Of a stretch of DNA of 64,000 bases, positions 8,008 through 47,349 are shown in pieces. Source of the stretch: Isurus oxyrinchus (taxonomy: Eukaryota). The stretch spans positions 1 through 64,000 of the forward strand of contig JANJGN010000323.1 of the NCBI GenBank assembly GCA_026770705.1, in the 5' to 3' direction. Numbering within the stretch: position 1 is the first letter of the stretch; the number at the start of each line of letters is the position of its first letter. The translations under genes were made by a program, and so were the position numbers. The notes beneath the pieces were generated by a model. The model had not been told where the DNA came from and ran no database searches. It saw only the letters and a list, made by a program, of their open reading frames with translations.

Positions 8008-8827
8008 GTACAAATTCATTACTGATCGGAACTCAGGGAATTGGATTCTTTCCTGGAGTGAGGAAGTGAACATTTAATTTTAGAGAACAGGGTTAGTGAT
8101 CACACAGAGAGTGAGTGATTAGCGAGTCAGAGAATATAGCAAAAGCAAAAGCCTCATACGGACTCGAAACACCAACTCTGTTTCTCTCTCCACAGATGCT
8201 GTCAGACCTGCTGAGTTTTTCCAGCATTTTCTGTTTGTGCATCAGAGAGCTTGTTTCAATAGGAATGACAGTGCATTTATATAGCACCTTTAATGCAGTA
8301 AAACATCCTTATTGCTTCACAGGATTCCCCCACAAGGGGTAACATCCCCTCAGCATCCACCCTGTCAAACCCCCCACCACCTCAGAATCTTATATGTTTC
8401 AATAAGATCACCTCTCATTCTTCTAAACTCCAATGGATACAGGGCCCAACCTGCTCAACATTTCCTCACAGGACAAACCCCCTTCATCCCAGGAATCAGC
8501 CCAGTGAACCTCCTCTGAACTGCGTCCAATGCAGAGTCTATCCCTCCCTAAGTAAGGAGACCAGAACTGTACACACTGCTCCTGATACAATCTCACCAAT
8601 GCCCTGTACAGTTGTAGCAAGACTCCCATCCTTTTATACTCCATCCCTTTGCAATAAAGTCCAACATTCCACTTGCCTTCCTCATTCCGTGGTGTTCCTG
8701 AATGCTGACTTTCTGTGATTCATGTACAAGGACACCCAGATCCCTCTGTACCGCATTCTGTAGACTCTCTCCATTGAAGTAATATTCTGCTTTTTGATGT
8801 CCAGTCCCCTCCCTTGTTGCCTTTCAG

Positions 8828-9115
8828 GAGTGACGTCAGAGGGATGGTCTATGAAGGCGCTGCCTCGGAGGGCCATCAGCAGCTCTTGTGTGGTTATTCC
8901 GTGTAGCTTTGACTTTCCTTCCCACTCTTACACAGCACTGCACGGAGCTTGGTATAAATATTGGTATAGATGGAAATATACCATCACATACACCAAAGAT
9001 CCCAATTATGGGGTGGCCACATTCGTGGGACGTGCTAAAATAATCGGCGACTTGGAAGGGAAGAATTGTTCGGTGAGGATTGACAGTCTCAGAGCTGAAG
9101 ACAGTGACGTGTATT
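8828..9115 (+). pseudogene. Truncated Siglec/MAG/CD22-type V-set exon (GVTSEGWSMKALPRRAISSSCVVIPCSFDFP...GAWYK...GRAKIIGDLEGKNCSVRIDSLRAEDSDVY)
   Basis: Phase-1 acceptor ctttcag|; Siglec hallmarks SCVxIPC, C-strand W, GDLxxxNCS and DSxxY. Homology stops at ~9115, where Gypsy gag-like sequence begins. No downstream C2/TM exons seen. Confidence 0.85.
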
Positions 9116-10480
9116 GCACCCAATTCTAAATCTTTTCACCAATTAGTCGACCTCATGAAGATGTGTTTTCAGCTGAAGCCGTGGGTAATAATGAAAAGGT
9201 TTAAGTTTAACTCCAGAGTAAGGGCCCAGGGAGAGTCCATCGCAACCTATACAGTGAAGTGGAAGCAGGTGACTGAGCACTGGGACCTCGGAGACACACT
9301 CAATGACATGTTGCGGGGCCGATTGGTTTGTGTCGTTCACCCCAACGCCATTCAGAGCCGTTTACTCGCAGAAGCCGACATCGATTTGAAGCGCACCATG
9401 GAAATAGCGCCAGGCATGGAAAGTGCTGGGAGAGACTGGCGGGATTTACAGGATGTACAACATGGCACCAGTCCTCAGCTGGGACAGGAACCAACCACCG
9501 GGCGTGAGGCTCAAACTGGAGTGAGAGAGAGAGAGAGAGAGACAGCCGCCAAGCGAGAGACAGTCTCTGCCGCTCCAGAAACTAAAAGGCTTCGTGGGAG
9601 TATTTCAGCAGCAACTCCGAAGTTGGCCTGTTCTCGATGTGGGGGGCATTGAGCACGTACTGGACACCTGCAGGTTCAAGGGGGCAGAATGCCATCACTG
9701 CCACAAGAAAGGGGCGGGTAATAAAGCAATGCAGGGTGAAATCGAGACAGCCCATCAGGCAGTGCACCAACATGATGGAAGTGAATAATATCACAGAGCC
9801 TGAAGCTGCTGATACCGATGTCTATTCCCTGTCCAATGTCACAGTGGTAAAAACTGAACCTATAACCATCACAACCCAAGTGAATGGGCAGCCACTAGTA
9901 ATGGGGCAGATACGGGAGCCTCAGACACAGTGGTGGAAGAGCCCACATTTAAACAGCTAAATGAAGGAACCCAGACGCTGAATTTAGAGCCAACAATGGA
10001 TCAGCTGAAGACACACACTGGAGAATCCATACAGGGAAAGGACCTCATCCCAGTACCTGTGTCCTACAGGCAGCAGACAGCCCAGCTTCCAGTGATCATA
10101 GCGACAGGTGAGGGCCCTAGTCTTCTGGGCCGAGACTGGTTCCAGAAAACCAAGCTCAGCTGCTCTGAAATGTTTCACTGGAGGAGTTGCTGAGTTGCTG
10201 GGGGAATATGAGAGTGTATCTCGGAATGAGTTTGAAGAATTGAAGCATCCTCACAGGCTGCAAGTGTCCCTCAGGTCAGAGTTGGTTCCACTGGAAAATC
10301 CTGAAGAGAAAGAAAGCGAATTCTGTGCCGCTCTGAGCAAACTGAAGAAACAGTTGGCAGGGAAGACCCAACCATGTCCAATGTTCCAGGAGGAAGGCAA
10401 GAGATACAAGGAAGAGACTGAAGAGCTGAAGATTCAGCTGAATGAAACCAAAGAGGCAGTTACAGTATCACAACAAGTTT
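9116..10480 (+). mobile_element. Decayed Gypsy/Ty3 LTR retrotransposon fragment (gag and protease)
   Basis: ORF pieces with gag-like RFKFNSRVRAQGESIATY...LNDMLRGRLVC, zinc-knuckle remnants (CSRCGGH, CHHCHKKG) and protease-like ITTQVNGQPLVM...GPSLLGRDW. Stops and frameshifts present. Confidence 0.8.
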
Positions 10481-11064: not shown

Positions 11065-11690
11065 AAGAGATGGGGAGGGTTACAGGGGCTGGAGGAGGTT
11101 ACAGAGATAGGGAGGGTTGTAGGGGCTGGAGGAGGTTACAGAGATAAGGAGTGTTGTAGGGGCTGGAGGAGGTTACAGAGATAGGGAGGGTTGTAAGTGC
11201 TGGAAGCTGTTCCAGAGATAGGGAGGGTTGTAGGGGCTGGAGGAGGTTACAGGTATAGGGAGGGTTGTAGGGGCTGGAGGATGACACAGAGATAGGGCGA
11301 GTTGCAGGGGGTGGAGCAGGTTGTAGAGATAGGGAGGGTTGTAGGGACTGGAAGAGATTACAGAAATAGGGAGGGTTGTGGTGGTTGGAGGATGTTACAG
11401 AGATGGGCAGGATTGTCAAGGCTGGTGGAGGCTTGGGAGATTATTAGGGTTACAGTGGCTAGAGGAGGTGACATGTATAGGGGTGTTGTCGGGCTGGAGG
11501 TTGTTACAGGGATAGGGAGGATTGTATGGGCTTGTGAAGGAGGTTACAGATATAGGGAGGGTTGTGGGAGGTGGAGGAGGTTACAGAGATGGGGAGGATT
11601 GTAGGGGCAGGTGGAGGTTACAGAGATAGGGAGGGTTGTAGGGGCTGGAGGAAAGGGACAGAGAGAGGAGGTTACAGATATAGGGAGGGA
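11065..11690 (+). repeat. 37-bp G-rich minisatellite GGAGGAGGTTACAGAGATAGGGAGGGTTGTAGGGGCT
   Basis: Tandem units; a degenerate array also lies at 43160-43630. Confidence 0.92.
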
Positions 11691-13479
11691 GACAGTCAGA
11701 GAGAGAGCCTCCAGGAGATAGAGAGCGATAGAGAGATTGAGAGACAGACAGAGACTGAGAGAGGGGGAAGAGAGAAGGAGAGTGAGAGAGAGAGAGAGCG
11801 ATTGTGAAAGATGGTGGAAGGGAAGAGTGGGGAGGAGGGGGCCTGATGGTATTTTCGCTGGACCAGTAATCCAGAGACCCAGTGTAATGCTCCTGGGACC
11901 CTGGTTAGAATCTCACCACAGCAGTTGGTGGAATTTCAATTCAATAAAAACCTGGAATTAAAAGTCCGATGATGACCAGGAAACCATTGCTGATTCTTGT
12001 ATTTGGGTCACAAATGCCCTTTAGGGAGGGAAATCTGCTGTCCTTACCTGGTCTGGCCTACATGTGACTCCAGACCCACAGCAATGTGGTTCACTTTTAA
12101 AAAGTGGCCTCTGAACAAGGGCAATTAGGGTTGGGCAATAAATGCTGGCCTAGGCAGTGATGTCCACATCACATGAAAGAATGAAATAAAAGGACAGAGA
12201 GGGACAGACAGAGTCGAGAGACACCCAGAATGAAAAAAAACACAGTAAACACTGGAAAATAAACATTCTGGTCTGATCTGGTCTTGTATACCTTCAAATG
12301 GAACACCAGTAAAACAGGGAAATAAGAGTACTGGGCCAAACTGTTAGAGAGGGTCACATTTAGAGAGAGAGAGAGAGAGTGGGAAAGAGGGAGACACTGA
12401 AAGAGATAAGGACAAGGAAAGAAAGAGTGAGAGAGAGAGAGACAGACAGAGACACACAAAGAAGTAGAAAGAAAGTGATAGAGATGAAGCAGGAGAGAAT
12501 GAGGAGAAAGATAGATAGATAGAGAGAGAGGATGGTAGAGAAAGAGAACGAGAGGAAAAGAGACAAAGGCAGAATGTGATGGAACACTGAATCCTTGTCT
12601 ATGCATTTTGAAATCCAGCCCAGAACTATCATTGGAAGAGTCAGCGAGTGTCCAGTACAGGGGACCCAGCCCAACCTTCTCATCCTGACCTTCCCAGTGG
12701 GGCTGAAGAGGGCAGAGAGGAAACCTTCCTCTGTTATTCTGTTGTCGAATAAACACAACAATTCTGGAACTCTGCCCTTTCTATCTCACGGATTAGAATA
12801 TAAGGGGGCAGAGGTCATGCTTCAGTCTACATAAAGCCCTGGCTAGACCACACCTGGAGTCACTGTGAGACATTCTGGGCCCCACACCTTAGGAAGGATA
12901 TATTGACCTCGGAGGGAGAGCAGTGTCAGTTTACCAGAATGAGACCGGGACTCCAAGGGTTAAATCACAAGGAGAGATTAAACACAAACTCGGCTTGTAT
13001 TCCCTGGAAGTTAGAATGTTAAGCAGGAGATTTGATGAAAGTTCGCATGATAATAAGGGGAACAGATCGGGGGCGATAAAGAGAAACCATTTCCCCTGGT
13101 TGGGGGGAGTCTGGGACTCAGGGTCAGAGCCTAAAAAGGAATTAAATTAGGAAGTACAAAGGGTGGGAGAAATTTGGAACTCTCTTCCCCAAACAGGAAC
13201 TGATGCACGATCAAGTTGTTCATTTTAAACCTGTGAGACTGATAGATTTTAGTTATCCAAAGGTATTAAAGGAGATGGGACAAAGCCATATGGGGCTAGT
13301 TTGCAGATCAGCCATGATCTCATTGAATGGTGGAGCAGGCTCGAGGGGCCAAATGGCCTCCTCCTACCCTCATGTAATAGAAACTTACCTGTCAGAAGCC
13401 AGTTTATGTTGATGTGAGTCTGAGTCGATGACTGAACCCAGTTGGTAACTTGTTCCATACAAAGCAAGAACGTTCATGC

Positions 13480-13945
13480 CCTTCAATGTTCCTGGATAAA
13501 CCATGAACAAAGCTGGTGACAGACAGTCTCCACATGGTAAACAGTTAACCCCTAAACCTCAGCGTAAATCAGTTCCCCCTCGAGGCCCCTTGTCCAAAAT
13601 AAAAGCAACGCACACAATTTGTAAAATAGTAAGTGTAGCAATGAGAGGAGTAAGGGGTTAGGGGGCATGCGGTTCACCTGATTTGCCGACATAAGAACCA
13701 GCCCCTCTGTTTTTGCTATGTTGTGTTGCGTCAATATGAACACATATCTGCACAAGGTGAAGGGCGTTGCGGAGGGACTGATAGTTCTCGGTGCCAGACA
13801 GTCAATGTCCCAGTGACCTTACTGCTGGTCCCAGGCCAGTGGGACAGGGAACATCGACACTGCAATATCCAGAAATGGGTGTGATACCACACAGCAACCC
13901 GCCCCCGGCTGTCCCCTTCAAGTGTTTCAGGTATAAGAGCAGGAA
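13480..13945 (+). promoter_or_regulatory. Putative hepcidin proximal promoter
   Basis: TATAAGA 13932-13938; C/EBP-ATF-like TTGCGTCAAT 13726-13735; BMP-RE/SBE-like GGTGCCAGAC 13790-13799; STAT-like TTCCTGGAT 13489-13497 (1 mismatch). Motif calls made by eye. Confidence 0.5.
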
Positions 13946-14008
13946 GCTCCTCTAGTTACAAACCAAAGCATCAAAGCAGAGCCAGAAGATCAGAAGAGAC
14001 AGGCAGAG

Positions 14009-14101
14009 ATGGGAAGCTCCCAGATGAAATGGCGACTTGTCTTGTTCACTCTGACTTTGCTGCTCTCCCTGCAGCTGAGTCACTTCTTCTCCTTGTCGAG
14101 G
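14009..14101 (+). CDS. hamp: Hepcidin exon 1 (signal peptide): MGSSQMKWRLVLFTLTLLLSLQLSHFFSLSR
   Basis: ATG at 14009 (alternative in-frame ATG at 14024), hydrophobic signal core, phase-0 donor AGG|GTAAGC, TATA-like TATAAGA at 13932. Joins exons 2 and 3 in frame. Confidence 0.88.
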
Positions 14102-14304
14102 GTAAGCTAAGAGATGTCCCTCTGGGTGAGGTGTTTCTTGCACATGACTCTACGTCTACCACCCAGATAGACTGGTCTCTTCCGCAGTTTGATATTATTA
14201 TGTTCGTGCCTTTAATATTGTCGCCCTCTATGAATTTAACATCATTTCCTTCTGTCGTTTCCCCTGAAATTCTCATTCTTGTTTTCAATCCCTCCTCAGC
14301 CACT

Positions 14305-15160
14305 CCCTATCTCTGTAACCTCCACCAGGCCTTACAACCCTCCCTATCTCTGTAACCTCCTCCAGCCCCTACACCCCTCCCTATCTCTGTAACCTCCTCC
14401 AGCCGCTACAACCCTCCCTATATCTGTAACCTCCTCCAGCCCCTACAACAATCCCTATCTCTGTAACTTCCTCCAGCCCCTACAACTGTCCCTATCTCCG
14501 TAACCTCCTCCAGCCCCTACAACCCTCCCTATCTCTGTAACCTCCTCCAGCCCCTATAAACCTCCCTATCTCTGTAACCTCCTCCAGCCCCTACAACCCT
14601 ACCTATCTCTGTAACCTCCCCCAGGCCCCACAACCCTCATGATCACTGTAACCTCCTCTAGACCCTACAACCCTCCCTATCTCTGTAACCTGCTCCAGAC
14701 CCTACAACCCTCCCTATCTCTGTAACCTCCTCCAGGCCCTACAACCCTCCCTATCTCTGTAACCTCCTCCAGGCCCCACGACCCTCAGAATCACTGTAAC
14801 CTCCTCCAGCCCCTACAATGCTCATGAACTCTATAACGTCCTCTCCACACTATAACTCTCCCTATCTCTGTAACCTACTGTGGCCCCTACAACAGTATCT
14901 ATTTTGGTAACCTCCTCCAGCCTCTACAACCCTCCCTACCTCTGTAACCTCCTCCAGCCCCCACAACCCCCCCCATCTCTTTAACCTCCTACAGCCCCTA
15001 CTCACCTCCCTATCTCTGTAACCTCCTACAGCCCCTACAACCTTCCCTATCTCTGTCACCTCCTACAGCCTCTAGAACCCTCCCTATCTCTGTTACCTCC
15101 TACAGCCTCTACAACCCTCCCTATCTCTGTAACCTCCTCCAGCCGGAACAACCCTACCTA
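14305..15160 (-). repeat. Same 37-bp minisatellite in opposite orientation, in hepcidin intron 1
   Basis: About 23 units of CCCTATCTCTGTAACCTCCTCCAGCCCCTACAACCCT. Confidence 0.95.
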
Positions 15161-15908
15161 AATCTCTGGTCTGAGTCTCACTCCAGGGAATTCAGTCCCA
15201 TAACGTCGGTCAACACTCCGTGCTGAGGGAGTGCTGGACTGTCAGAGGGTCAGTAGTGTGGAAGTGTTGCACTATTGGAGGGACAGTACTGAGTGAGTGC
15301 TATACTGTCGGAGGTCAGTACTGAGGAAGTGCTGCATTGTTACAGGGTCAGTACTGTGGAAGTGTTGCACTGTCGGAGGGTCAGTACTGAGGTAGCGCTG
15401 CACTGACGGAGGGACAATACTGTGGGAGTGCAGCACTATCGAAGGGTTAGTACTGAGGGAGTGCTGCAGTGTCAAAGGGTTAGTACTGAGGGAGCACAAC
15501 AATGTTGAATGAGACATTAAACCGAGTCCCCCGTCTGCCCTCTCGGGCGGGTGTGAAAGATCCCACAGCCACTATTTGGAGGAAGAGCAGGGGGTGTTCT
15601 CCCCGGTGTCCTGGGACCAATATTTATCCCTCACCCAACATCACCAAAAACAGATGATCTAGGCCATGATCACATTGCTATTTGTGGGATCTTGCTGTGC
15701 ACAAATCAGCTGCCACATTTCCTACAGTGTGAGTGCACTTCAAAAACATCCTTCAGTGGCTGTGAAACGCTTTGGGATGTGGTGAAAGGCGTTAGAGAAA
15801 TGCAAGTCTGTCCTCCTCCCCCTCTCTCTCCTGTACCTCTCTCTCTCTCTCTCCCTCTCCCTCAATCCTCCTCTCACTTTCTCCCTGATAAATTCTTTCT
15901 TTTTGCAG

Positions 15909-15965
15909 GTTGACACTGCTTTAGGTTCTTCGACGATTGAGAAATCTGTGGATTCCCCGGACACG
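15909..15965 (+). CDS. hamp: Hepcidin exon 2 (pro-region): VDTALGSSTIEKSVDSPDT
   Basis: Strong polypyrimidine acceptor ttctttcttttttgcag|, 57 nt, phase 0/0, donor ACG|GTAGGT. Size and phase fit the short middle exon of vertebrate HAMP genes. Confidence 0.82.
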
Positions 15966-18356
15966 GTAGGTGGAAATTCATTCCTTATTTTAAGGTTTCT
16001 CCCTGCTCGTTTCTTCCACAGAAAGTTTTCTGATTTCAAGCTGATTTCAGTGGCAGTCTGTCTCGGTTATACTCAGGAGGCATGTTTGAAATCGAACCCC
16101 CCCTCAATTTTTTTGCAAAGCTGGGAAGAGGCAATTCCAAGGAAGTGAACATATCCCCACAGGAATTTTAAATGTAACCCACGCCGGGAATAGTGAGAGG
16201 GAGACTGATCCAGCCTGGGAGTGGGTTAAAGAGAGGCTGGGAGTCGAGAGTCGGAGAGAGGGATGGAATGGGGGAGGGAGGGATTGGAAGAGAGAGACAG
16301 AGAGTGGGACGGGGAGGGGTGAAAGGGAAAGAAAATAGGTGGGAGAGAGTGACAGAGGGAGAAATTAAAGAGATGCAGAGTGAGGGAAAGTGAAAAGGGA
16401 AGAGAGATTGTCCAAGAGAGAGAAATTAACAGGAAAGGGAGAGTTACAGAGTGAGCGAAAGTTACAAAAATAGTGTGAGAGAGAGGGAGAGATACAGAGT
16501 GGGAGAAGGAGACAGGGGAGAGAGAGGGAGAGAGACAGGAAAAGGGAGAGAGGAGAGAAAGATTGGGAGAGAGGGCAATTGAGCGGAAGAGTAGGAGAGA
16601 GAGAGACAGGGAGAGGAGGAGTGGAAGAGAGGAAGAGAGAGAGAGATATGGAGCAGGAGAACACCTCCTCCGGTCCCGATGTTCCTCCAAAATCTCTGAC
16701 ATTACTGCATCTCCCGGGTCCCCCTGATTCCCATCGCTCTACCATTGGTGGCCGTGCCTTCAGCTGCCTGGGGCCCTGAGCTCCGGAATACCCTCCCTTA
16801 ACCTCTCTGCCTCTCTCTCTCTCTCTCCTTTAAGACGCTCCTTAAAAACTGACATCTTTGACCAAGCTTTTGGTCACCTATCCCTAATATCTCCATATGT
16901 GACTCAGTGTTAGACTTCTCTCTGATTTACGCTCCGGTAATGTGGGCTGGGACATTTTGCAATGTCAGAGGCGCTGTGTAAATGCAAGTTGTGAGTGTTA
17001 TGTGGAAGGGAGACCCCAGGCGGCAGTCAGTGCCAGAGACTGGAGTCATTGTGTGCAGACCGTATCTAATCTCTCCGAATGCACAATCGGTTTGACTGTC
17101 AGCCAAAGCATTTTTGATATTTGATCCTTCTACCTGTTTATAACCAGGCCTACATCAAACACCGAGAGGCTGGTTAATCAACAGACACCTTAGAGGATCG
17201 AGTGAAAGACAAAGAGGACTTGCATTTCTCTATAAAAACAAAGAAAACTGCAGATGCTGGAAAGCCAAAACAAAAACAGAATTACCTGAAAAAACTCAGC
17301 AGGTCTGGCAGCATCGGCAGAGAAGAAAAGAGTTGACGTTTCGAGTCCTCAGAAGGGTCATGAGGACTCGAAACGTCAACTCTTGCATTTCTCTAGCGCC
17401 TTCCAACACATCAGGACGTCCCAAACTGTTTCGCAGACAATCAAGTGCTTTTTTTCTTTCATGTGAGGTCACTGATGTACTGTGGGAAAAGAATCAGCCA
17501 TTGGCGCACAGTAAGATCCCACAGACAGCAGCATGATAATGACCAGCGCGCTCCCAGTACTTGCACTGCAAGTGTCAGTTCAGGGTGTCTGCTCGATTCT
17601 CTGCAACTCTCAGCTCTGAGTTAAAAGGACCACCAGGCATAATTGAGAAATTACCGATTTGTCGGAGGGTCAGTACCAGCGGGGGGGCAGGAGAGTCGGA
17701 GGGTCAGTACTGAGGGGGCGCTGCATTGTCAGACAGTCAGTCTTGGAGTGCTGCATTGTCAGAAGGTCAGTACCGGCGGGGGACTGCACAGTCGGAGGGT
17801 CAGTACTGAGGGGGTGCTGCATTGTCAGACGGTCAGTACTGAGGGAGTGCTGCACAGTCGGAGGGTCAGTACTGAGGGGGTGCTGCACTGTTGAAGGCGC
17901 TGTCTTTCAGATGAGATGTTAAACTGAGACAACATCTGCCCTCTCAGATGGATGTAGAGGATTCCATGGCCACAATTTAAATGAAGTGCGTCAGGAGTTG
18001 GGGGTATGTGTGGAGGGGGTGGTGGGGGGTGGATGGGATGCAGTTATGTCTGCTTTCCTGGGGCAAACATTTATCCCTCAACCGACATTGGTAAAAAACT
18101 GAAAATCGGGGCCATTATCACATTTCTGTTTGTGGGATCTTGCTGTGCGTGAATTGCCTGCTGCGTTTCCTACATTACAGCGGTGAGCTCACTTCAGAAA
18201 AAGTCCTTCCTTCAGCTGTGGAACACTTTGGGCCATCCCGAGGAGGGGAAAGGCGCTATAGAAATGCGCCATCCTCCTTCCAATGACGCGCCTGATTGAA
18301 ATGATGCCTTCTTTCTTTCCGGAATGTTCTCACCTATTGTCCTCCTGCTTTTCCAG

Positions 18357-18473
18357 GGCTCCTTGCTGCAGCGCCAGAAGAGAATGGACAGACAGCAGCT
18401 CTGCAGATTCTGCTGTAACTGCTGTAATTGGAGAGGACCAAATGAGACTTGTGGTCTCTGCTGTAGATATTAG
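18357..18473 (+). CDS. hamp: Hepcidin exon 3: GSLLQRQKR|MDRQQLCRFCCNCCNWRGPNETCGLCCRY*
   Basis: Acceptor cctgcttttccag|, furin site RQKR, then the 8-Cys hepcidin pattern C-x2-CC-x-CC-xn-C-G-x-CC and TAG at 18471-18473. AATAAA at 19313. Confidence 0.96.
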   Translation, partial: GSLLQRQKRMDRQQLCRFCCNCCNWRGPNETCGLCCRY

Positions 18474-18932
18474 ACCCTGGCCTCATTCACGCAAGGTCAT
18501 CCTGCACCATGCCACAGCCTCTCCCCTCCTTATCTACTGCTTAGCAATCTATTTCACACAGGCCCTGTTCATTAATTCCAACTGAAACTTTACCTGCGTT
18601 TTACAGCAGGGAAAGGAGCCATTCGGCCCATCTGTTCCATGCTGGAGTTTCTGCTCCACACGAGTCTCCGCCCACCCCTTCTCCATCTCACCCCATCACC
18701 ATATCCTTCTATTCATTTCTCCCTCATGTGTTTATCCAGCTTCCCCTTAAATACATCGACACTATTCACCTCACGTGACTGTGTTTGTGTCTGTCTTTAT
18801 GAGCGTGTGTGTGTGTGTGTGTGTGTGACTGTCAATATGTGTGTGTCAATGTGAATGTGTGTGATTGTGTCAGCGTGTGTGTGTGTATGTGTGACTGTTA
18901 GTGCGTGTCAATGTGAATGTGTGTGATTGTGT

Positions 18933-20949: not shown

Positions 20950-22920
20950 CACATCCAGTCGTGGACAATTAAACAACTCACTGGAGGAGGAGTCTCCACA
21001 AATATCCCCATCCTCAATGATGGAGGAGCCCAGCACACCAGTGCAAAAGACAAGACTGAAGCATGCGCAACAATCTTCAGCCAGAAGTGCTGAGTGGGTG
21101 ATCCATCTCGGCCTCCTCCTGAGGTCCCCAGCATCAGAGATGCCAATCTTTAGCCAATTCGATTAATTCCACGTGATATCAAGGAAGGGCTGAAGGCACT
21201 GGATATTGCAAAGGCTCCAGGCCCTGACAATATTCTGGCAATAGTACTGAAGACTTGTGCTCCAGAACTTGCTGCGCCCCTAGCCAAGCTTTTCTGGAAT
21301 TTTCTAGTACAGCTGCAACACTGGCAACTACCCGGCTATGGGGTACGTCCTGTACACAAAAAGCAGGACAAATCCAACCCAGCCAAATGCCCAGCAGTCT
21401 ATTCTTGATCATTACTAAAGTGATGGAAGGGGTCATCAACAGCGCTTGCAAGCAGCACCTGCTTAGCAAGATACTGCTCACTGACGCTCAGTTTGTGTTC
21501 CACCAGGATCATTCAGCTCCTGGCCTCATTACAGCCTTGGTTCAAACATGCACAAATGAGCTGAACTCCAGAGGTGAGGTGAGAGTGACTGCCCTTGACA
21601 TCAAGGCAGCATTTGACTGAGTGTGGCAAAACAAGGAGCCCGAGCAAAACTGGAGTCAATGGGAATCGGGGGAAAACTCTCCGCTGCTTGGAGTCATACC
21701 CAGCACAAAGGACGATGGTTGTGATTATTGGGGGTCAATCATCTCAGTTCCAGGACATCACTGCAGGAGTTACTCAGGGTAGTGTCCTAGGCTCAAACAT
21801 CTTCAACTGCTTCATCAATGACCTTCCTTCCATCATAACGTCAGAAGTGGGGATGTTTGCTGATGTTTGCACAATGTTCAGCATCATTCATGGCTCCTCA
21901 GATACTGAAGCAAGTTATGTCCAAATGCAGCAAGACCTGGACAACATCCAGGCTTGGGCTGACAGGTGACAAGTAACATTCATGCCACACAAGTGCCAGG
22001 CAATGACCAGCTCCAACAAGAGAGAATCTAACTGAAGGCGCAGAAAATTTGGATTTATTTTAAAGAGCCAGCCAGGACCAGCAGCTAGGGTGACAAAGCG
22101 TACACAGACAATCACATCCTTACGTGAAAGCTAAAAACCTGTACAAAGGGCTCAGCTGGAAATTTGCAATGAGGAAATGGGAGACACACACACAAGGACA
22201 CAGGGTGACTCAATCAAGAATTGGGGAAGGTTATTTCACACCGTCCGATGGCCTTGAACCACATCCAGTCAGCCTCCGGAAACCTTTTGTATCGAACAAA
22301 CATAGATTCTTTGCTGTCTCAAAAGGACAATAGCCAGTCTCTGCCCTGTAATTACTGTACAAGAACACAATTATCAGCCCACCGGAGGGTCATTGTGCTG
22401 TGGCCTTTGTCTAACTAATACCATTACCTTGTAACTGAGAGTAAAAAATATATAAACTGTGCTCATTTGAACCTCGGTGGAGAAGCGCCTGGACTGCCCA
22501 GCGTTTGCTCCCCACATGCCTAATAAAGGAACCACTTGAATATTGCATCTGGAGTCCGAGTGTTGACATTTTGTACCAGAATATCCCACAGACCATTCAT
22601 AACCATCGCCCCTTGGCATTCAATGGCATTACCATCACTGAATCCCCCAATATCAACATCCTGGGAGTTACCATTGAGCAGAAACTGAACTGGACCAGCC
22701 ATATAAACACTGTGGCTGCAAGAGCAGGTCAGAGGCTGGGAACCCTGCAGACAGTAACTCACCTCCTGACTCCCCAAATCCTGTCCACCATCTACAACGC
22801 ACAAGTCAGGAGTGTGATGGAATACTCTCCACATGCCTGGATGAGTGCAGCTCCAACAACACTCAAGAAGCTTGACACCATCCAGGACAAAGCAGCCCGA
22901 TTTATTGGCTCCCCTTCCAC
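20950..22920 (+). mobile_element. CR1-clade LINE ORF2 (RT) fragment, interrupted by the solo LTR
   Basis: ALDIKAAFD, GVTQGSVLG..FNCFINDLP, MFAD, ILGVTIEQKLNWTSHI motifs, with frameshifts. Confidence 0.9.
22033..22599. mobile_element. Solo-LTR-like insertion (567 bp) inside a CR1 LINE
   Basis: TGAA...TTCA termini, flanked by a 4-bp direct repeat TAAC (22029-22032 and 22600-22603). It splits otherwise contiguous CR1 RT sequence. Confidence 0.75.
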
Positions 22921-24414
22921 AGAGCTAGATAGATTCTTGATTAACAAGGGGGTGAAAGGTCATTGGGGGTAGGCAGGAATGTGAGGTTGAGGTGACAATC
23001 AGATCAGCCATGATCTTACTGAATGGCGGAGCAGGTTCGAGGGACTGAGTGACCTACTCCTGATCCTAACTCAGATATCCATATGTTCTCAAAGGCAAAT
23101 GGGGATGGGCAACAAATACTGGCCTAGTCAGCGACACCAACATCCCTGAAATGAATAAGAAAAAAATGTATCAATCAATTAAATTTATTGATTAATCGAA
23201 TCTAAATTCCTCCAGCTGCCGTGGTGGGATTTGAACCCGTACCTCCAAAGCATTCACCTGGGCCTCTGGATCACTGGCCTAGTGCCATTCCCATTGTGCG
23301 ACTGTCTGCTATCATCATGGCTCTTTCACATCGATGTGGAAGTCCTGATAACAGAAGCATTGGACGAGGTACAGAAAGGTGTCAGATCAGGAGCTCCATT
23401 GCTCAATATGAACGGATAATAAAGATAAATGAACATAAACCTTCCAGTCGCTAATTAGGGAGTCACTGTGGAGCCCATGAGTCCCTCGCAGCGCTATTGC
23501 AACCTTCTGGATCCCCAGTAGGGGACTCGGGGTGCAGCTGTGTCTTCCTCATCATTTGGAAAAGCCGGAATTGTTCGGGTGCCCCTTCAAACAGGCCAAA
23601 GATGCAGTGGGTGATGTCTCCCACAGGCCCTGGGAGACCTCCCCTGCCAATTTGTTTTGTAGCTTATTCTTCAACTGCGACATTGGATCAGCTTGAAAAA
23701 GGGTGAGGCTGAGGCAATACCACCAGGTAAGCGTCTATCCCCTCCCACTTCACCCCCCCCACCCCCGTAACCATCACAGTCCCTCCCATCGTGCTGGAGG
23801 AGCATAATGTGCACATTCCCCTCCTTCCAATCAGTCTCCTCCCTTCCTCTCTAATCCTTGATCTTATTGTGTTCGGGGTTGACATCCCAGTCCTCCTCCC
23901 TAGACTGTCTGATGTTGACATCCCAATGCCCCATGTAGACCTGACCTCTCTCCAACTAGAGGCCCATTGTACTGTGACTTACAGAGACCACCGGCCCCCC
24001 TCGATTCCCACCCCCACCCCTACTCTCTATATTACCTGCTCCCCACTGACCGGCTGCAGATGCCTCCCCTGACTGGGATTGTGCCACCTGCGGCCTAGTA
24101 TCAAGCCACCCACCCCCAGGACCGACGTGTGTGAGGGACTGACCACGTCCTGCACACCATGCTGGGCACCACCAACCCAGGACTGCCAGGCTCTCCCCAC
24201 CACACTGGACTGGGCCTAGAATAGGCATGCCAAGCACAGCTCTCTAAATCGTGGCGCAGATCCACAGCACTCGCAATGTTTTGTGGCCCGAATCCTTGCT
24301 GAGGAACTGCCCAGGACTAAAATCAAAACAACTGCAGATGCTGGAAATCCAAAACAGAAACAGAAACAGAAATACCTGGAAAAACTCAGCAGGTCTGGCA
24401 GCATCGGCAGAGAA

Positions 24415-28326: not shown

Positions 28327-28648
28327 AGGGCAGGAATCAAGAAGCCCGTTCACAGGATTACCAACAGAAAGTGAACAACAATTTATACTTAATGGGAAGA
28401 GAGTGCTGATTGGTTGGCAAGTGGTCTCTGATAGGTGGAGGTGTTGCCATGGAGAATGGTGTGTGCGAGATATAAAGTTTAGACAGCTTGTCTCTTCATT
28501 CAGCAATAATCAAATAAAGATCAATTAACTTCTATCGACTTTGAAGCACTTAGAGAGGCCTTAGAATGTGGATACTGAGAACGGGCTGCACTGTCAGAGG
28601 GTCAGCGCTGAGGGAGTGCTGATGTAGAATGAAAGTGTATGTAATTAC

Positions 28649-28945
28649 CTTGCACAGTTAGTACGAGGGTCCGCTCCGATGAAACAGATGGATATCTCAC
28701 TCTGCAGCTGAGAGTGTGTCCGTGGTGTTTGAGTGATGGAATCAGGGTCACAACACAAGTATAGGTCAGAGTGACACCATGCTGAGTTACAGTGTATGAG
28801 ACTGATCCAGGGACGTCAGTGGGAGTGTCCCAGGTTAAGACAGGTGCTGCTGTTCCATTGCATGTTGTGTTGAAGGTGCAGCTTACATCCATACGCTTTC
28901 CTGCAATAATTTCAGCAGGGAATATCGTGGGTTTATCTGTGAAAT
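28649..28945 (-). CDS. Gene A first C2-set exon (DFTDKPTIFPAEIIAGKRMDVSCTFNTTCNGTAAPVLTW...LSCRVRYPSVSSERTLVLTVQ)
   Basis: 297 nt, phase 1/1, open frame, acceptor ctgtctgttag|, donor G|GTAATT. Siglec domain-2 pattern with the BC-loop Cys. Confidence 0.85.
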
Positions 28946-38189: not shown

Positions 38190-39230
38190 ACAGAGGTGCC
38201 AAGCTGCTGAGGTGACACACAGGACTACATACACACCAAACAGCGGAAACAACATGCTATAGACAGAGCAAAGCGATCCCACAACCAACGGGTCAGATCT
38301 AAGCTCTGCAGTCCTGCCACATCCAGTCATGAATGGTGATGGACAATAAAGATCTAACAGGAGGAGGATGTTCCACAAATATCCCCATCCTTAATGATGG
38401 GGGAGCTCAGCACATCAGTGCAAACGACAAGGCTGAAGCATTGGCAACCATGTTCAGCCAGAAGTGCTGAGTGGATGATCCATCTCGGCCTCTTCCAGAG
38501 GGTCCCAGCATCACAGATGTCAGCTTTCAGACAATTCGATTGACTCCACGTGACATCAGGAATCAGCTGATGATACTGGATACAGCAAAGGCTATTGGCC
38601 CTGGCAACAACCCAGCAACAGGAAATAATGTGGCTACAAGAGCGGGTAAGAGGCTGGGAACTCTGCAGTGAGTAATTCAACTCCTGACCCCCCAAAGCCT
38701 GTCCACCATCGGACAAGGCACAAGTCAGGAGTGTGATGGAATAATCTCCACTTGGCTGGATGAGTGCAGCTCCAACAACACTCAAGAAGCTCGACACCAT
38801 CCAGGAGCAGCTTGTTTGATCGACAGCCAATCCACCAGCATAAACATTCATACCCTCCACCACTGGCACACAATGGCAGCAGTGTGCACCATGTACAAGA
38901 TGCGCTGCAGCAACTCACCAAGGCTCCTTCGACAGCACCTTCCAAACCCTTAACCTCTTCCACCAAGACAGTTCCAAGTCAGTGAGGTGTGTGACTTGGA
39001 GGCGAACTTGAGGTGGTGGTCTGCCCTGGGACTTGGAACTATATCGGCCGTTCCTTCACCGTCGCTGGGTCAAAATCCTGGAACTCCCTCCCTAACAGCA
39101 CTGTGGGTGTACCTACACCACATGGACTGCAGTGGTTAAAGAAGGCAGCTCACCACCACCTTCTCAAGGGGCAGTTACAGATGGGCAATAATTTCTGGCC
39201 TTGTCAACAATACTCACATCCCATGAGCTA
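38190..39230 (+). mobile_element. CR1-clade LINE fragment with internal deletion
   Basis: Homologous to 20950-21240 and 22710-22890. Confidence 0.8.
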
Positions 39231-39264
39231 ATAATAAGAGAACGTTCAATTCTGTGTAACTCAC

Positions 39265-39546
39265 GTTCCACAGTGATGTTTATGAATCCCTCCACTGCTC
39301 CATGTTCATTCTCTGCCACACACTGATAGTCTCCAGTGTCCCTGGATGTAACGTGAGGAATCACCAACCACAGCTCATTGTTGGAACTTGTTCTGTTCAT
39401 TGGGACATTAAGATGTCGCCACGTCAGGTTAGAAGCTGGGAAGCTCTCGACAGAGCAGATTATCACTGCAGAATTCCCCTCAATTATATTGATCGATGAA
39501 GCGTTAATCATATCAAGAAAATTAATTGAGAGATTCTGTGGTGCAT
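39265..39546 (-). CDS. Gene B second C2/I-set Ig exon (DAPQNLSINF...IEGNSAVIICSVESFPASNLTW...RDTGDYQCVAENEHGAVEGFINITVE)
   Basis: 282 nt, phase 1/1, canonical C...W...DxGxYxC, acceptor tttgtttatag|, donor C|GTGAGT. Confidence 0.93.
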
Positions 39547-40290
39547 CTATAAACAAATAAACATCAATTAAGTTACACTGACTGTGAAGCACTTTGAAAG
39601 ACACTTAGAATGTGAAAGGTATGATCTCAATGTAGGTTCTTTTTCACAAAGCCCGTAATCCAGGCAGAGACTTCAGTTCAGTACTGAGGGAGTGCTGCAC
39701 TGTCAGAGGGTCAGTACTGAGGGAGTGTTGCACTGTCAGTGGGTCAGTCCTGAGGGAGTGCTGCACTGTCAGAGAGTCAGTACTGAGGGAGCACTGCACC
39801 GTCAGAGGTTCAGTGCTGAGGGAGTGCGGCACTGTCAGAGGGTCATTACTGAGGGAGTGCTGTACTGTTGGTGGGTAAGTACTGAGGGAGTGCTGCACTG
39901 TCAGAGAGTCAGTACTGAGGGAGTGCTGTACTGTCAGAGGTTCAGTACATAGGGACAGCTGCACTGTCTGATGGTCAGTCCAGAGGGGGTGCTGCACTGT
40001 TGGAGGGTCAGAACTCGGGGGGTGCTGCAGTGTGGGAGGGCCAGTACTGAGGGAGCACTGCACTGTTGAAGAGTCAGTACTGAGGGAGTGCTGCACTATC
40101 GAAGGTTCAGAACTGAGGGAGTGCTGCAGTGTTGGAGATTCAGTATTTAGGGACTGCTGCAGTGTCAGAGGCGAATTTGTATCAGTTAAAGACTATTGAT
40201 TTGTTGCTAAACACAATGCAGTTGTGGGATCTTGCAGTGTACTATGTAGAGCTTTCTAGCTAATGTAGATGGAAGGGTGTCCGTTCTTAC

Positions 40291-40587: not shown

Positions 40588-41325
40588 CTAACAGACAGAG
40601 AATGGATCCTTTTAGACAAATATAACGTGAAGCATCAGTTCAAATAGAAACCACAGTCCCACAAGAGAAAGCACTTTTACAAGGATGATATCAGAACTGA
40701 GAGGTTACAATGATCAGGAGAGCATTTCCTGCTTTGACACTTTGGTGTTTCTGTCTCGCAGCTTAACACACGTTCACTCCGAGACACTTGAACTGATAAT
40801 AGTGGGTGAGGGTGGAGGAGCAGACCAGAGTTTGGAGTGCACTACCCCATCATTCACTCAGCAATCTGGGCCATTTATTACTTTGCAATTTGTGGGAGCT
40901 TGCTGTGCGCAAATTGGCTGCTGTGTTTCTCACATTACAACAGTAACTACAATTCAGGAATCAGCTCATTGGCTGTGAAGTGATTTGGTACGTTCTGAGG
41001 TGGTGAAAGGTGCTATAGAAATGTGAATCTTTCTTCTGTCGATATGTCAGGCTTCGAGACATTAGAGATTAGGATTAGAGAGATCGATGGGAGTGGATAA
41101 CCTGATAACATTGATGGACACAGTCAATATATTTAATCATTGATATTAAAGTGAGTATTAGAGGTTGCTTTAGGACTGAACTGGAAGCTATCACCAGGAT
41201 ATCGAGAATCAGACAGTGTGTTATAATAAGCTGTGTTTTGTGTTAATATGTAAACATCATAGTTTGTGTTATTTCCCATTGAGTGTTGAATGTGAAATGT
41301 TGAGTAATTATAACACAGCACTTAC

Positions 41326-41691
41326 CAGAAACATGAAGCTGGGTTACAGGGTAATAGTTATAGCTCGGAGCATTGTCAAATTCTATTCTGAAAAAATAAG
41401 GTCCTGCATCTTCCCGTCTGATGTTGTTTATAATCAGAGAACAGTCGCCATCTTTCAGGTCTCCAGACAGCCGGGTCCGATGGTGGAACTGTGGTAACTC
41501 GTGACTGTGATCCTTGGAGTGAAAGGCTATAGACAATGTTCTCCGTTCCTCATTATTAAACCAGACTCCAACTCGTGGTTGGTTTTCCAGACACGATGGA
41601 TAACTGTAATGACATGGAATCTGTACACAGGAATCTTCCTGCGCTGTCACCTCTCGTGGAGTGTCACCTTTCCACTCTTGTGACAGTCCAA
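41326..41691 (-). CDS. Gene B membrane-proximal Siglec V-set exon (Vb) with essential Arg (DAGPYFFRIE)
   Basis: 366 nt, phase 1/1; SCVQIPC, W, GDLKDGDCSL; no F-strand Cys; F-R-x-E motif typical of sialic-acid-binding V-sets. Confidence 0.93.
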
Positions 41692-43659
41692 CTGTGGAGA
41701 GAAATCTCAATATTTATCTCTGGATGTTTTGTGGATCCACTGAACCCGATATTTACAGATGAGACAGAATTTGGAGGATGGTTAATACTGAGGAGAATGG
41801 CAACAAATTATTTTGGCAGGATGAATAGAAAAACAGAATATTATTTAAATGGAGAGAGGCTGCAGAATGCAGTACAGAGGGATCTGGGTGTCCTGGTACA
41901 TGAATCACAGAAAGTCAGCATTCAGGAACACCACGGAATGAGGAAGGCAAGTGGAATGTTGGCCTTTATTGCAAAGGGATGGAGTATAAAAGGAGGGAAG
42001 TCTTGCAACAGCTGCACAGGGCGTTGGTGAGAATGTAACAGGATCATTGTGTACAGGCAGTTCAGAGAAGCTTCACTGGGCTGATTCCTGGGATTAAAGG
42101 GTTTGTCCTGTGAGGAAATGTTGAGCAGGTTGGGCCTGTATCCATTGGAGTTTAGAAGAATGAGGGGTGACCTTATTGAAACATATCCGATTCCGAGGGG
42201 GCTTGACAGGGTGGATGCTGGGAGGATGTTTCCCCCTCGTGGGGGAATCTAGAACCAGGGAGCACAGTTTCGGAATGAGGACTCTCCCATTTAAGACTGA
42301 GATGAGGAGGAATTTCCTCTCTCAGAGGGGCGCTAGCCTGTGGAATTCTCTTCCCCAGAGAGCAGTGGAGGCTGGGCCATTGAATAGACTCAAGGCTGAG
42401 TGAGGCAGGTTTTTGATCGACAAGGGAGTCAAGGGTTTGGGGGACAGGCAGGAAAATGGAGTTAAGGACACCACCAGATCAGTGAGAGCAGGCTCGAGGG
42501 GCCGAATGGCCTGCTCCTGTCCCTATTTCTTATGTTCCTACATTCTTACCTTCTTAAAATATTAAAGCTGCAGAATAAACATGCAAGTGAATGACCCGCT
42601 CGACCCACCTTCCATCTGGGGGTCCCATGGGGAGGACCCTTCCTGAGCCAGATCCACCAGCCAACATGGTCTGGATCCGAGCACTGGAGACACGGTGGGG
42701 AGTGACTAACAGGCTCCTTGTGACAGGCCCCATCTGTCCAATGGCTGGCTTTCAGCTGCCATGGCCAGAGTGGTCCTTGCTAAAACCGGCTCAGGACAGG
42801 CCAGGACCCCTGTGCAAACCCCCTCCAGCACGGCAGCCTCTGTACAAACCCCTCATGTGCTTGTGGATAGACACAAACAAGGCTGCACATTACCGAGGAG
42901 AATCCCCTCTACGGACTAAGGGGCTGACTCATCACCTTAAACTCAGCAAATGAGGAGGCTCTCGCTCGGTATCAGGGCTTGGCATTGGCTCAATAAAAAT
43001 AATCAAATTACATTTTGGTCAGAAATCTAAGGATGTTGTACATTCCCTCAAAAATAAGACTCAAGGCTGAAGGCACAACTGCCGATGTTGGAGTTTTGGG
43101 ATCGGGGGATGGTCAAGAGGCTTGGATTGGAGGAGCGCAGAGACCTCATATGGTTGGAGTGACTGGAGGAGGTTACAGAGATAGGAAGTGTTGTACGGTC
43201 TGAAAAAGTTAAGAGAGATTGGGAGAGTGTAGGGTCTGGAGGAGATTACAGAGACAGTGAGGGTTGTAGTGATTGGAGGAGTTACAGAGATAGGGAGGGT
43301 TGTAGCCGCTGGAAAAGTTAAGAGAGATTGGGAGAGTGTAGGGTCTGGAGGAGTTTGCAGAGGTCGGGAGGGTTGTAGTGACTGGGGCAGGTTACAGGGG
43401 CAGGGAAAGTTGTCGGGACTGGAGCAGGCTACAGAGATACGGAAGCTTTTAGGGGCAGGAGGAAGTTACAGAAATAGGGAGGTTTGTAGTGGCTGGAGGA
43501 GGTTGCAGAGATTGGTAGGTTTGTTTTGGCAGGATGAATTTACAGCTATAGGGAAGTGGTAGAGAATTGAAGAGGTTACAGAGAATGGGATGATTGTAGG
43601 TACTGGAGGAGGACAAGGAGATTACAGAGATAGTGAGGAAACAAAGATGAAAATTTGGA

Positions 43660-44610: not shown

Positions 44611-44866
44611 AGGGGTGAAAGGTGTAGTGGGGAGGAGATACTTCACTCAGGGGGGAGGTGTCATCACCCCTCAGCTCGGTTTACATTACAGCTATGATGT
44701 GGATTCAATCACACACAATAAGCTCATGGATCTGGGAGCAGAAATAGACAAATCATTAAAAATAGTGACGCTGGTTAACACGGCCAAAAAACAAGCAAAT
44801 CAAACACTATTATTTCCCATTGAGTGTTGGATGTGAATTGGTGAGTAATTATAACACAGCACTTAC

Positions 44867-45244
44867 CAGAAACGTGAAGCTGGGTTACAGGGGAAACGTT
44901 ATGGCTCGGACGATTGCCAAATTTTATCGTGAAAAAATAAGGTCCTGCATCTTCCCGTCTGATGTTGTTTATAATCAGGGAACAGTCGCCATCTTTCAGG
45001 TCTCCAGACAGCCGGGTCCGATGGCGGAACCGTGGTAACTCGTGACTGTGTCCCTTGGAGTGAAAGGCTATAGACCATTTAGACCATTTGTTCCGTATGT
45101 ACCTTCTCATTTTCCAGATTCCGACATGTGGTTTCTTTACCAAATCTGATGGATAACTGTAATGACATGGAATCTGTACACACAAACCTTCCTGCGCTGT
45201 CACCTCTCGTGGAGTATCACCTTTCCACTCTTGTGACAATCCAA
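44867..45244 (-). CDS. Gene B distal Siglec V-set exon (Va) lacking the essential Arg (DAGPYFFTIK)
   Basis: 378 nt, phase 1/1, intact splice sites and frame; Arg->Thr; basic C-C' loop KMRRYIRNKWSKWS. Confidence 0.88.
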
Positions 45245-47349
45245 CTGGGGAGAGAAATATCAATATTTAACTCTGGATGTTTTGTTGATCCACTAGACTC
45301 GATATCCACCCCCTCCATCACTCGGGCACAGTGGCTGCAGTGTGGACCATCTACAGGACACACAATGAACTCCACAAGATATCACACCAGATGGAAGAGA
45401 ATCCTGGACACAAAAGCGGAAAAGTTCATTCTACATTGGTTCATGGTCCTCAGGGACCCTGTTTGTGCAGAAGCCTGTTCTCCAACAGAACTGAAGTTGG
45501 GGAAAATGCATTTGGAATTCCATTGTCCGGGGCATTGGGTTAACTTGCTGATTTTGTTTTAAATCTAACATCTATTTTTGGTCTGTTGCCTTAAAGGGAC
45601 TGTAACTGGGAGTCAGGTTAATTAGGAATTTTAGGAGTTATGATAGCAGTCTTGTAGTTACGTATGTGCTTGAAATCCTTTATTTTGATGACAAATATGT
45701 TAATTTATTGTTTTAAATCTCTAAAGGTATTGGTGGAGTTATTGCTTCTGGATTAAGTGCACACATTTCATAATAAATACAAATTGCAAAATCATTATGA
45801 TAGTGTGACCACCTTTCTCTCAGGGACTTGGTCTGCCTAGCACACATCACCTGCCAAGTGATAACACTGTTGTAATATGCCTTTCAGGGACAGCAGCATG
45901 ACATCACTCGAGAGGAAGTGTGTCATGTGATTTTTAGGAACTGGTGTTCGCTTAAGTAAGTTCTATGTGTATTTGTGTGCGTTAGGCAAAAGGTCTATCT
46001 TTAAGTTCAAGTTTAGTTTGTATTTCTGTATTTGGGTGTTGAGAAAAGGGGGAACTTGAGTTAAAAAGAAGCCAGCATTCCATTGAGGTTTTATGACTGT
46101 CGAAGGGAAGTCAAAACAAATACAAGGTGTAAGAAACTGTGCTGTTGCCTAGCAACAGTGATCCAGGGGGAAGGACCCACAGAGACCGAGAAAAACAGAA
46201 AAGTACTTTCAGTTCTGTTGAAAGGAGTTGCCAGGAGAAGCAGCAAAGGAGCGGGACAGATAGTCAGTCCCAAAGTAAAGAAGAAGCCAAAACTATAGAG
46301 TTTGACAGGAGAAAGGGCCCAAGAAGACGTTCTAGTCAAATCTGGAAAAGGCCCTGTTAAGTGAAGTTAAGAGTGAGGAGCAGAAGAAGGCTTCAAGCAT
46401 AAAGGGAGAAAGCAGCAGGACACAGACCTAAAGCAAAATAGGCTTGTGAGAAGCCAGAAGATCCTAGGAGACACCACAGGTTGGTGACTCATTACTACGG
46501 CCATGTGAAGCCATGGTGTTCCATTGACACGGCTGAGCATTGGAGAGACAGGGAGTGGAAGGAAGGCTGAATGCACGTGGCGATCCAGGGGACAGGAACA
46601 TGGGAAGGAGAGTTTGAAATAGTGAAAGTGGTCCCGTGTGGAAGGTGTCTGAGTGAAAGTGTCATGATGGAGAAGATTCCAAAGTGAGTTCTTGCAGAGT
46701 GGAGATTGGAAACTCTCATATGAAAGAAGCTTTTCAGTGAGACTGGTTGGCTCACAGTGTAACAAGCGTCTGGGGACAGATGAGACATAGAAGTTGTTTC
46801 AAGTGGGCTCTGCCACTTGCTTTCAGAATGTTGTGTCCCTGACCACAGGTCGTCTATTGGTTTACACGGACTGTGTACTTAGTGTGAACATGAGAATATA
46901 AGATAGTTATCGTAATTTGTGTTCTACTTATGTATCTGTAAAGGTATAGGTCTGGGTGAAGGAGTAATGTCATATAGTTAGTCTTTCCTAGTTTAATAAA
47001 TGTTTTATTCTTTTGTTAGACGTTCATCAGATGACTCCTGTGACTCTGTTCAGTAGCCGCACTCCACATTCCTAAATAAAAAATAAAAGTTAGGACCTAT
47101 CAAGCTGAGTTCCACCCTGGGATCTGACTTGCCCAGTAGTAACATCAGCTGGGATGGTAACACCATCCAGTCCAAGTTTCACTTTGGCCTGTGAGCAGAA
47201 CACAGCTCACACAGTTTGGCTGCAGGTGTCTCCCAGCTTTCTATCCTTGTATATCTGTTCTCATGTCCCTGTTCTAAATAACTGAACCCACAATGTATTT
47301 ACCCAATTCCATATCAGTGGCTGGTGCCTTTATATCATTATAAAAACAT

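Follow-up and report, generated by a model that had tools for sequence, protein, structure and literature searches.

A transcribed shark hepcidin gene with a divergent N-terminus, predicted to be a hamp2-like paralogue

Introduction

Hepcidin biology has so far been built on mammals and teleosts, and in a literature search no study of the types of hepcidin in cartilaginous fish was found. The nurse-shark plasma proteome includes hepcidin (PMC9207270), and, according to a review, the hepcidin-binding cysteine of ferroportin first appears in cartilaginous fish (PMC8235187). In human hepcidin, the bioactive epitope comprises residues 1–9, above all His3, Phe4, Ile6, and Phe9 (PMC7915682). In sea bass, ferroportin is regulated by Hamp1 and not by Hamp2, for which antimicrobial activity has been shown (PMC5665920).

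The present analysis concerns a stretch of 64,000 nucleotides from Isurus oxyrinchus (contig JANJGN010000323.1, hereafter called the window), in which the plus strand at 18384–18473 encodes a hepcidin-type peptide with an unusual N-terminus. The locus raises the question of whether this peptide belongs to an intact and expressed gene and, if it does, whether its product would still act as the iron hormone or would serve another purpose.

A predicted mature hepcidin of 29 residues

The interval 18384–18470 on the plus strand encodes a predicted mature hepcidin-type peptide of 29 residues, MDRQQLCRFCCNCCNWRGPNETCGLCCRY, as judged from its translation, from Pfam, and from the alignment with hepcidins of Heptranchias perlo, and a stop codon follows at 18471–18473. 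Its eight Cys residues, at positions 7, 10, 11, 13, 14, 23, 26, and 27, fit the hepcidin pattern C-x2-CC-x-CC-xn-C-x2-CC, which occurs at one place only in the six frames of the window, and translation of the reverse strand of the peptide region gave nothing comparable. Upstream of the peptide and in frame with it lie the sequence GSLLQRQKR and the splice acceptor ttttccag. The match to the Pfam family Hepcidin (PF06446) scored 31.5–31.8 bits, where the gathering score is 27, with an E-value of about 2e-7, and since this score lies above the gathering cut-off, a chance Cys-rich ORF is ruled out.

The spacer between Cys5 and Cys6 has eight residues, NWRGPNET, as compared with the four residues HRSK in human hepcidin, for which the sequence and the disulfide map are given in PMC7915682. 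In the PF06446 alignment, 33 peptide residues are placed on 29 profile positions, and the loop is thus an insertion relative to the profile. A first-pass annotation, made from the letters of the window, had described a 29-mer that keeps all eight Cys and has this longer spacer; the translation and the Pfam match bear out the former, and the counts given for the spacer are right. It had also pointed out that the ORF track misses the peptide, which is true but trivial, because the exon-3 ORF has 49 aa, falls below the usual 60-aa cut, and is listed once the minimum is lowered to 20 aa.

The computed net charge of the mature peptide is +2 with a pI of 8.2, which is only mildly cationic for an antimicrobial peptide and counts somewhat against a defence role. 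The computed mass is 3477.1 Da in the reduced form and about 3469 Da with four disulfides. AlphaFold2 applied to exon 3 with a 3-row alignment returned an all-helix model with a mean pLDDT of 55, too low to bear on the disulfide-locked beta-hairpin fold of the family, and the best ESM Atlas score, 0.76, was to a plant hypothetical cluster and is uninformative. The sole match in a PDB sequence search was bass hepcidin (1S6W), and this match was weak (E 0.32).

The peptide is encoded by the last exon of an intact three-exon gene

The stretch 18384–18473 belongs to the last exon of an intact hepcidin gene of three exons and 88 codons on the plus strand. The coding part of exon 1 (14009–14101, 31 codons) specifies MGSSQMKWRLVLFTLTLLLSLQLSHFFSLSR, a signal-peptide-like start, and ends at a phase-0 donor that is followed by gtaagc. 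Exon 2 (15909–15965) adds 19 codons of the pro-region, VDTALGSSTIEKSVDSPDT, with phase 0 at both ends and contig joints on either side, and the coding part of exon 3 (18357–18473) adds 38 codons, so that all exon borders are in phase 0 and 31 + 19 + 38 codons give 88. Exon 3 starts with the end of the pro-region, GSLLQRQKR (18357–18383), which is aligned with GSLLLREKR in H. perlo and ends in the furin-type site RQKR (18372–18383) directly before the mature peptide. The three-part layout of hepcidins, with a signal peptide, a pro-region, and RQKR before the mature peptide in exon 3, is therefore present. A tblastn search with the H. perlo hepcidins also matched 14009–14113, with 46% identity and an E-value of about 1e-3.

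Intron 1 (14102–15908) and intron 2 (15966–18356) are both of the GT..AG type and are defined by contig joints. Intron 1 contains a 37-nt tandem array and a SINE-like repeat, and intron 2 contains SINE-like repeats and a rarely used cassette exon. The gene at 14009–18473 is the sole hepcidin copy in the 64-kb window, in which no second one was found; runs of N at 1314–1462 and 2263–2444 are sequence gaps in the window.

At the 5' side, a motif scan located a TATA-like box, TATAAG, at 13932–13937 on the plus strand. The earliest transcribed bases observed lie about 30 nt downstream of it, in a contig from the public run X4 that begins at about 13963–13965 and extends to the exon-1 donor. In the 1 kb upstream (13000–14010), neither GGCGCC (BMP-responsive) nor TTCNNNGAA (STAT) nor CACGTG (E-box) was found, which is a weak hint on the iron response. 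At the 3' side, a 289-nt contig of X4 is identical to 18437–18725 with zero mismatches, and the 3' untranslated region, which begins at 18474, thus reaches at least 18725. Downstream of the stop codon there is no AATAAA before 19313, and AATACA occurs at 18750.

The gene is transcribed and spliced as predicted

A run search with exon 3 identified the runs X1–X4 of organism A, which hold 74–91% of the sampled words, and the runs X5 and X6 of organism B, which hold 35% of them. For the comparison with contigs of public runs, 5,101 bases of the window were used, and the run type was guessed as RNA. The joint 14101>15909, in which intron 1 is skipped exactly, was found in 10 contigs of X1 and one contig of X4, and the exact skip of intron 2 (15966–18356) was found in nine contigs of X1 and one of X4. 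Contigs without both introns at the predicted GT..AG borders represent spliced RNA, and the shark hepcidin gene at 14009–18473 is transcribed and spliced as predicted. The first-pass annotation would have been undone by a gene that is not transcribed, and the contigs carrying both joints settle this point in its favour.

In X1, the summed k-mer depth was 1.3e5–1.6e5 in exons 1 and 2 and 5e5–8e5 in exon 3, as compared with about 700 in unique intron bins, and the window's own letters at 18386–18391 carry a depth of about 7e5; because the family has several copies and the depths are sums over its contigs, such high values are not assignable to the window copy alone. The many contigs at each joint indicate that there are several variant transcripts. 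The deepest contig across the junction of exons 2 and 3 in X1 has T for C at 15964, which turns the final exon-2 codon from Thr into Met, and is deeper than the exact junction. This T variant is probably another copy or an allele, and its greater depth indicates that the expression of the family comes only partly from the window copy.

A cassette exon of 155 nt (17148–17302, plus strand), which sits in a repeat within intron 2, is rarely used; its joints, 15965>17148 and 17302>18357, were seen in one X1 contig each. When read on from exon 2, it reaches a stop after nine codons, and its inclusion would thus give a minor isoform without the mature peptide.

A transcript with a canonical N-terminus in the same run

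A single contig of X1 agrees with the window as far as 18386, the end of the ATG after RQKR, and then continues with 38 differing letters. The 30 letters shown of this diverging end read in frame S-H-L-S-I-C-M-Y-C-C. The resulting N-terminus, M-SHLSICMYCC, has His3, Leu4, Ile6, and Tyr9, which is the canonical pattern, and is close to the N-terminus of sea bass Hamp1, QSHLSLCRWCC (PMC5665920). The window and the SHLSIC transcripts differ at 13 of the 30 nt that follow the common ATG, whereas the upstream part fits at 90% or more. The gene behind the SHLSIC transcript is absent from the 64-kb window. This contig, a single contig end in one run, is probably derived from an iron-hormone paralogue of the same species that is encoded elsewhere, and the 30-nt transcript end suggests that a hepcidin whose N-terminus is of the usual kind exists in this species as well.

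Heptranchias perlo has a canonical and a non-canonical hepcidin

In an exhaustive HMMER search with exon 3 among 1.84e9 protein representatives, two proteins were recovered with E-values of about 5e-4, both of them hepcidin-1 of the sevengill shark H. perlo (protein isoforms X1 and X2). Protein isoform X1 is joined in its 90% cluster by a "hepcidin-like" protein from the same 15.7-Mb contig; the names of the latter (XP_067831447.1) and of hepcidin-1 (XP_067831448.1) come from the automatic NCBI annotation. A word-indexed protein search with the exon-3 ORF, in versions of 49 aa and 57 aa, gave no candidates, a result that for a word index is no proof of absence, and the same kind of search with H. 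perlo hepcidin-1 returned its own two isoforms only.

The H. perlo hepcidins are 88-aa precursors that divide in the same way as the exons of the window gene (31+19+38), and they share with it an initial MxSSQMK and the GSLL..R.KR that precedes the cleavage point, the pro-region ending in GSLLLREKR in both of them. The mature parts, WTHVPICLYCCGCCNKKGARITCGFCCKL in hepcidin-1 and WTDEPHCRFCCGCCNKKDARITCGICCKW in hepcidin-like, also have 29 residues, the same Cys spacing, and an eight-residue loop N...T, and are aligned with the window copy without a gap. Over exon 3, the identity is 51–53%, whereas just 4–5 of the 21 non-Cys mature residues are common. The N-termini differ, with MDRQQL in the window copy, WTHVPI in hepcidin-1, and WTDEPH in hepcidin-like. 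Hepcidin-like, as the window copy, is without His3 and without a hydrophobic residue 4 and has C-R-F-C-C, and H. perlo accordingly has a canonical copy, WTHVPICLYCC, beside a non-canonical one, WTDEPHCRFCC.

The first-pass annotation had regarded the extended loop as an oddity of the window peptide. This part of its reading does not hold, since both annotated H. perlo hepcidins carry the eight-residue loop in a gapless alignment, and the loop is the shark norm rather than a peculiarity of the window copy. The long loop was also considered as a mark of function loss and was rejected as such: the canonical H. perlo hepcidin-1 has an identical eight-residue loop, which is thus no sign of a lost hormone function.

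Between the two H. perlo paralogues, 1 of 59 positions is changed in the prepro part, as against 8 of 29 in the mature part (Fisher p = 4.6e-4). The two transcripts of the window species show the same contrast of a prepro part that is alike and a sharply diverged mature part. Other host-defence peptide families likewise combine a hypervariable mature part with signal and pro parts that are conserved. Positive selection has been reported on teleost hepcidins (PMC3325200). In addition, C-R-F-C-C is found in both non-canonical shark copies and C-(L/M)-Y-C-C in both canonical ones, a pattern at two sites that hints at an old split into canonical and non-canonical copies with later homogenised pro-regions.

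The reading frame is retained in organism B

Low-depth contigs of organism B (X5/X6) cover exon 3 at about 97% identity. Relative to the window, they have one additional base at 18386 and one base fewer at 18391, five bases apart, with the frame restored, and their first mature residues are M-R-Q-Q instead of M-D-R-Q. The compensating +1/−1 pair speaks for selection on the frame, and the translated contigs show that the N-terminal arm varies between close species.

Half of the ferroportin epitope is replaced

The mature N-terminus, MDRQQL, has Arg3 and Gln4 in place of His3 and Phe4, and the absence of His3 and of an aromatic residue 4, as noted in the first-pass annotation, is thus confirmed as a true divergence of the N-terminus. 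The iron-regulatory-type epitope (His3, Phe4, Ile6, Phe9) is not present as such in the window peptide: Leu6 and Phe9, that is, two of the four patch residues, remain, and Cys7 is kept.

Compared with human hepcidin-25 (HAMP), the window gene has the same Pfam family, Cys pattern, and three-part precursor with a furin site, and Ile6 (as Leu6), Cys7, and Phe9 are kept in the peptide. In contrast, His3 is changed to Arg, Phe4 to Gln, Pro5 to Gln, and Ile8 to Arg, the loop has eight residues instead of four, the X-X-His motif present in the human peptide is missing, and a sequon is found in the window peptide. With an N-terminus of M-D-R and not a single His in the mature peptide, the window copy is without the amino-terminal X-X-His (ATCUN) metal-binding motif of hepcidin that is described in PMC4850187 and PMC7232333.

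A loss of ferroportin activity in the window copy would be expected from these replacements, and weak residual binding may persist through Leu6, Phe9, Cys7, and the scaffold, all of which are kept. Since the epitope is half lost and the animal apparently also expresses a canonical paralogue, it is simplest to suppose that the window copy is not the iron hormone. The first-pass annotation had named, as part of what would speak against it, that this N-terminus is the usual single-copy chondrichthyan form, which is not so, as canonical N-termini are encoded by the X1 contig and in H. perlo.

A sequon in the loop

The hairpin loop of the window peptide contains the sequon N-E-T (18441–18449, plus strand, by translation). 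The H. perlo copies, in which the aligned residues are R-I-T, have no sequon; its Thr is common to them, and the Asn is new in the window copy. In bass hepcidin (1S6W), P-N-M-S is aligned with P-N-E-T of the window peptide. When the non-Cys residues were shuffled with the Cys fixed, a sequon arose in 8% of the shuffles. The first-pass annotation was thus right that the sequon is there; as evidence, it is weakened by this rate and by the N-M-S of the bass peptide.

It is possible, though doubtful, that N-E-T is used, in which case the product would be an N-glycosylated hepcidin and a glycan at the tip of its hairpin would alter its properties. The site is an N-X-T in which X is not Pro, it would be exposed in the loop of a secreted precursor, and the conserved Thr with a newly arisen Asn is consistent with its use. 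Against this stand the chance rate and the position of the site, which lies between disulfide-bonded Cys in a small precursor that ends nine residues further on. Oligosaccharyltransferase often skips sites placed in this way. Bass hepcidin, with N-M-S at the aligned place, has moreover reportedly been purified in unglycosylated form. If the site were used, an N-glycan on the enlarged loop would make this the first glycosylated hepcidin.

The gene lies among Siglec-type exons

A V-set exon of the Siglec type is found at 8794–9129 on the plus strand, with scores below the Pfam cut-offs. On the minus strand, V-set and Ig_CD22 exons above the Pfam cut-offs are found at 41246–41710, 44778–45263, and 58472–58939, and further Ig exons at 39167–39604 and 28605–28892. 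The three V exons on the minus strand closely resemble one another as copies (EWKGDTPREVTAQE...YFFRIEF). Siglec-type exons thus flank the hepcidin gene on both sides. In the human genome, the order is USF2-HAMP-MAG-CD22, with HAMP beside MAG and CD22, and in view of the Siglec exons here the locus looks syntenic.

Discussion

Teleost Hamp2 (bass hepcidin, PDB 1S6W; sea bass Hamp2, HSSPGGCRFCCNCCPNMSGCGVCCRF) is similar to the window peptide in that a QSHLS-type N-terminus is missing, the CRFCCNCC core is identical, and both end in CCR-aromatic and have P-N-x-S/T in the loop; teleost Hamp2 occurs together with a Hamp1-type copy, as the window copy apparently does. The loop, however, has eight residues in the window peptide and five in teleost Hamp2, and the N-terminal arm of the window peptide is of full length, with six residues before Cys1, unlike that of teleost Hamp2. 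Since the nearest relatives are shark hepcidins, the likeness to teleost Hamp2 is probably parallel. Descent from acanthopterygian hamp2 does not agree with the searches, in which the significant relatives were from sharks only and 1S6W reached an E of 0.32 with a gap at the loop.

The account that we favour, with reasonable though not high confidence, is that the window gene is a hamp2-like non-iron-regulatory paralogue with a predicted secreted defence role, and that the canonical copy is the iron hormone. In this account, the window gene would be one paralogue of a hepcidin family situated among CD22/MAG-type Siglec genes, and within the family the signal and pro parts would stay alike while the mature part diverges sharply. 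The 88-residue precursor, consisting of the signal peptide, the pro-region, and RQKR, would be cleaved at the furin site to release a 29-residue hairpin peptide with eight Cys. The window copy would have lost His3, Phe4, and the X-X-His motif and retained Leu6, Cys7, and Phe9. The iron-hormone role would most likely rest with the canonical M-SHLSIC copy, and the window copy would most likely be a secreted host-defence peptide, as teleost hamp2 is.

The window peptide might instead still be an iron hormone, either redundant with the canonical copy or the partner of a co-evolved or second ferroportin. The retention of Leu6, Cys7, and Phe9, of every disulfide partner of the four bonds, and of the CC-basic-aromatic motif at the C-terminus agrees with this, as does the very high expression, which is expected of hepcidin, and a second ferroportin gene exists in some cartilaginous fish (PMC8235187). 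That second ferroportin, however, is without the equivalent of Cys326 that is needed for hepcidin binding (PMC8235187), and in the four-residue patch described in PMC7915682 His3 and Phe4 are replaced by Arg and Gln. Sea bass Hamp2, which also has no such motif, does not regulate ferroportin (PMC5665920). The SHLSIC transcript and the canonical H. perlo copy make co-evolution unneeded, and, between the two readings offered in the first-pass annotation, they favour the non-iron-regulatory paralogue over the co-evolved hepcidin-ferroportin pair. On balance, we consider an iron-hormone role of the window peptide unlikely. It is less probable still that the gene is a young surplus copy that drifts without function and is transcribed only by virtue of a strong promoter, which it would have received as part of an amplified hepcidin-Siglec segment. 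The minor out-of-frame cassette isoform would fit such a copy, but the frame is open, none of the eight Cys is missing, and neither the furin site nor any of the four splice sites is damaged. Organism B, moreover, keeps the frame by two compensating length changes, and the differences between paralogues cluster in the mature peptide, unlike the even spread of neutral decay.

A more far-reaching version of the favoured reading, in which sharks would have arrived at two types of hepcidin separately from teleosts, with the divergent type amplified together with the Siglec genes, supplying the dominant transcript, using its loop N-glycan, and acting on a target other than ferroportin, is in our view quite improbable as a whole. 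The hamp2-like paralogue that we favour is a modest extension of a known theme and no new kind of system, and similar shark proteins are already public under automatic names. What is new here is the common shark loop, the canonical/non-canonical pair of H. perlo with its contrast between prepro and mature parts, and the SHLSIC transcript end. Taken with the SHLSIC transcript and the pair of H. perlo, the window locus suggests that the split into a hormone type and a divergent type also exists in sharks, and the timing of this separation of roles becomes testable in the oldest jawed-vertebrate lineage.

Repeats in and around the gene

The tandem array of intron 1 (14303–15160) consists of 23 copies of a 37-nt unit with 83% matches, and a similar unit recurs at about 11100–11600 on the other strand, as judged from ORF translations. 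The SINE-like elements of the two introns lie at 15223–15495 and 17659–17891 and contain 33-nt internal repeats (GGTCAGTACTGAGGGAGTGCTGCAC...); copies are numerous across the window and draw thousands of contigs in all four runs. Within intron 2, the segment 17244–17384 is a near-perfect inverted repeat (…GAGTTGACGTTTCGAGTCCTCA / TGAGGACTCGAAACGTCAACTC…) with very high contig depth in all runs, and from its letters it looks like a small hairpin-forming mobile element. The contigs of organism B (X5/X6) have a 22-nt insertion at 18308, just before the acceptor region of exon 3. Downstream of the gene, at 21255–22972, ORFs resemble reverse-transcriptase fragments and may derive from a LINE-type retroelement.
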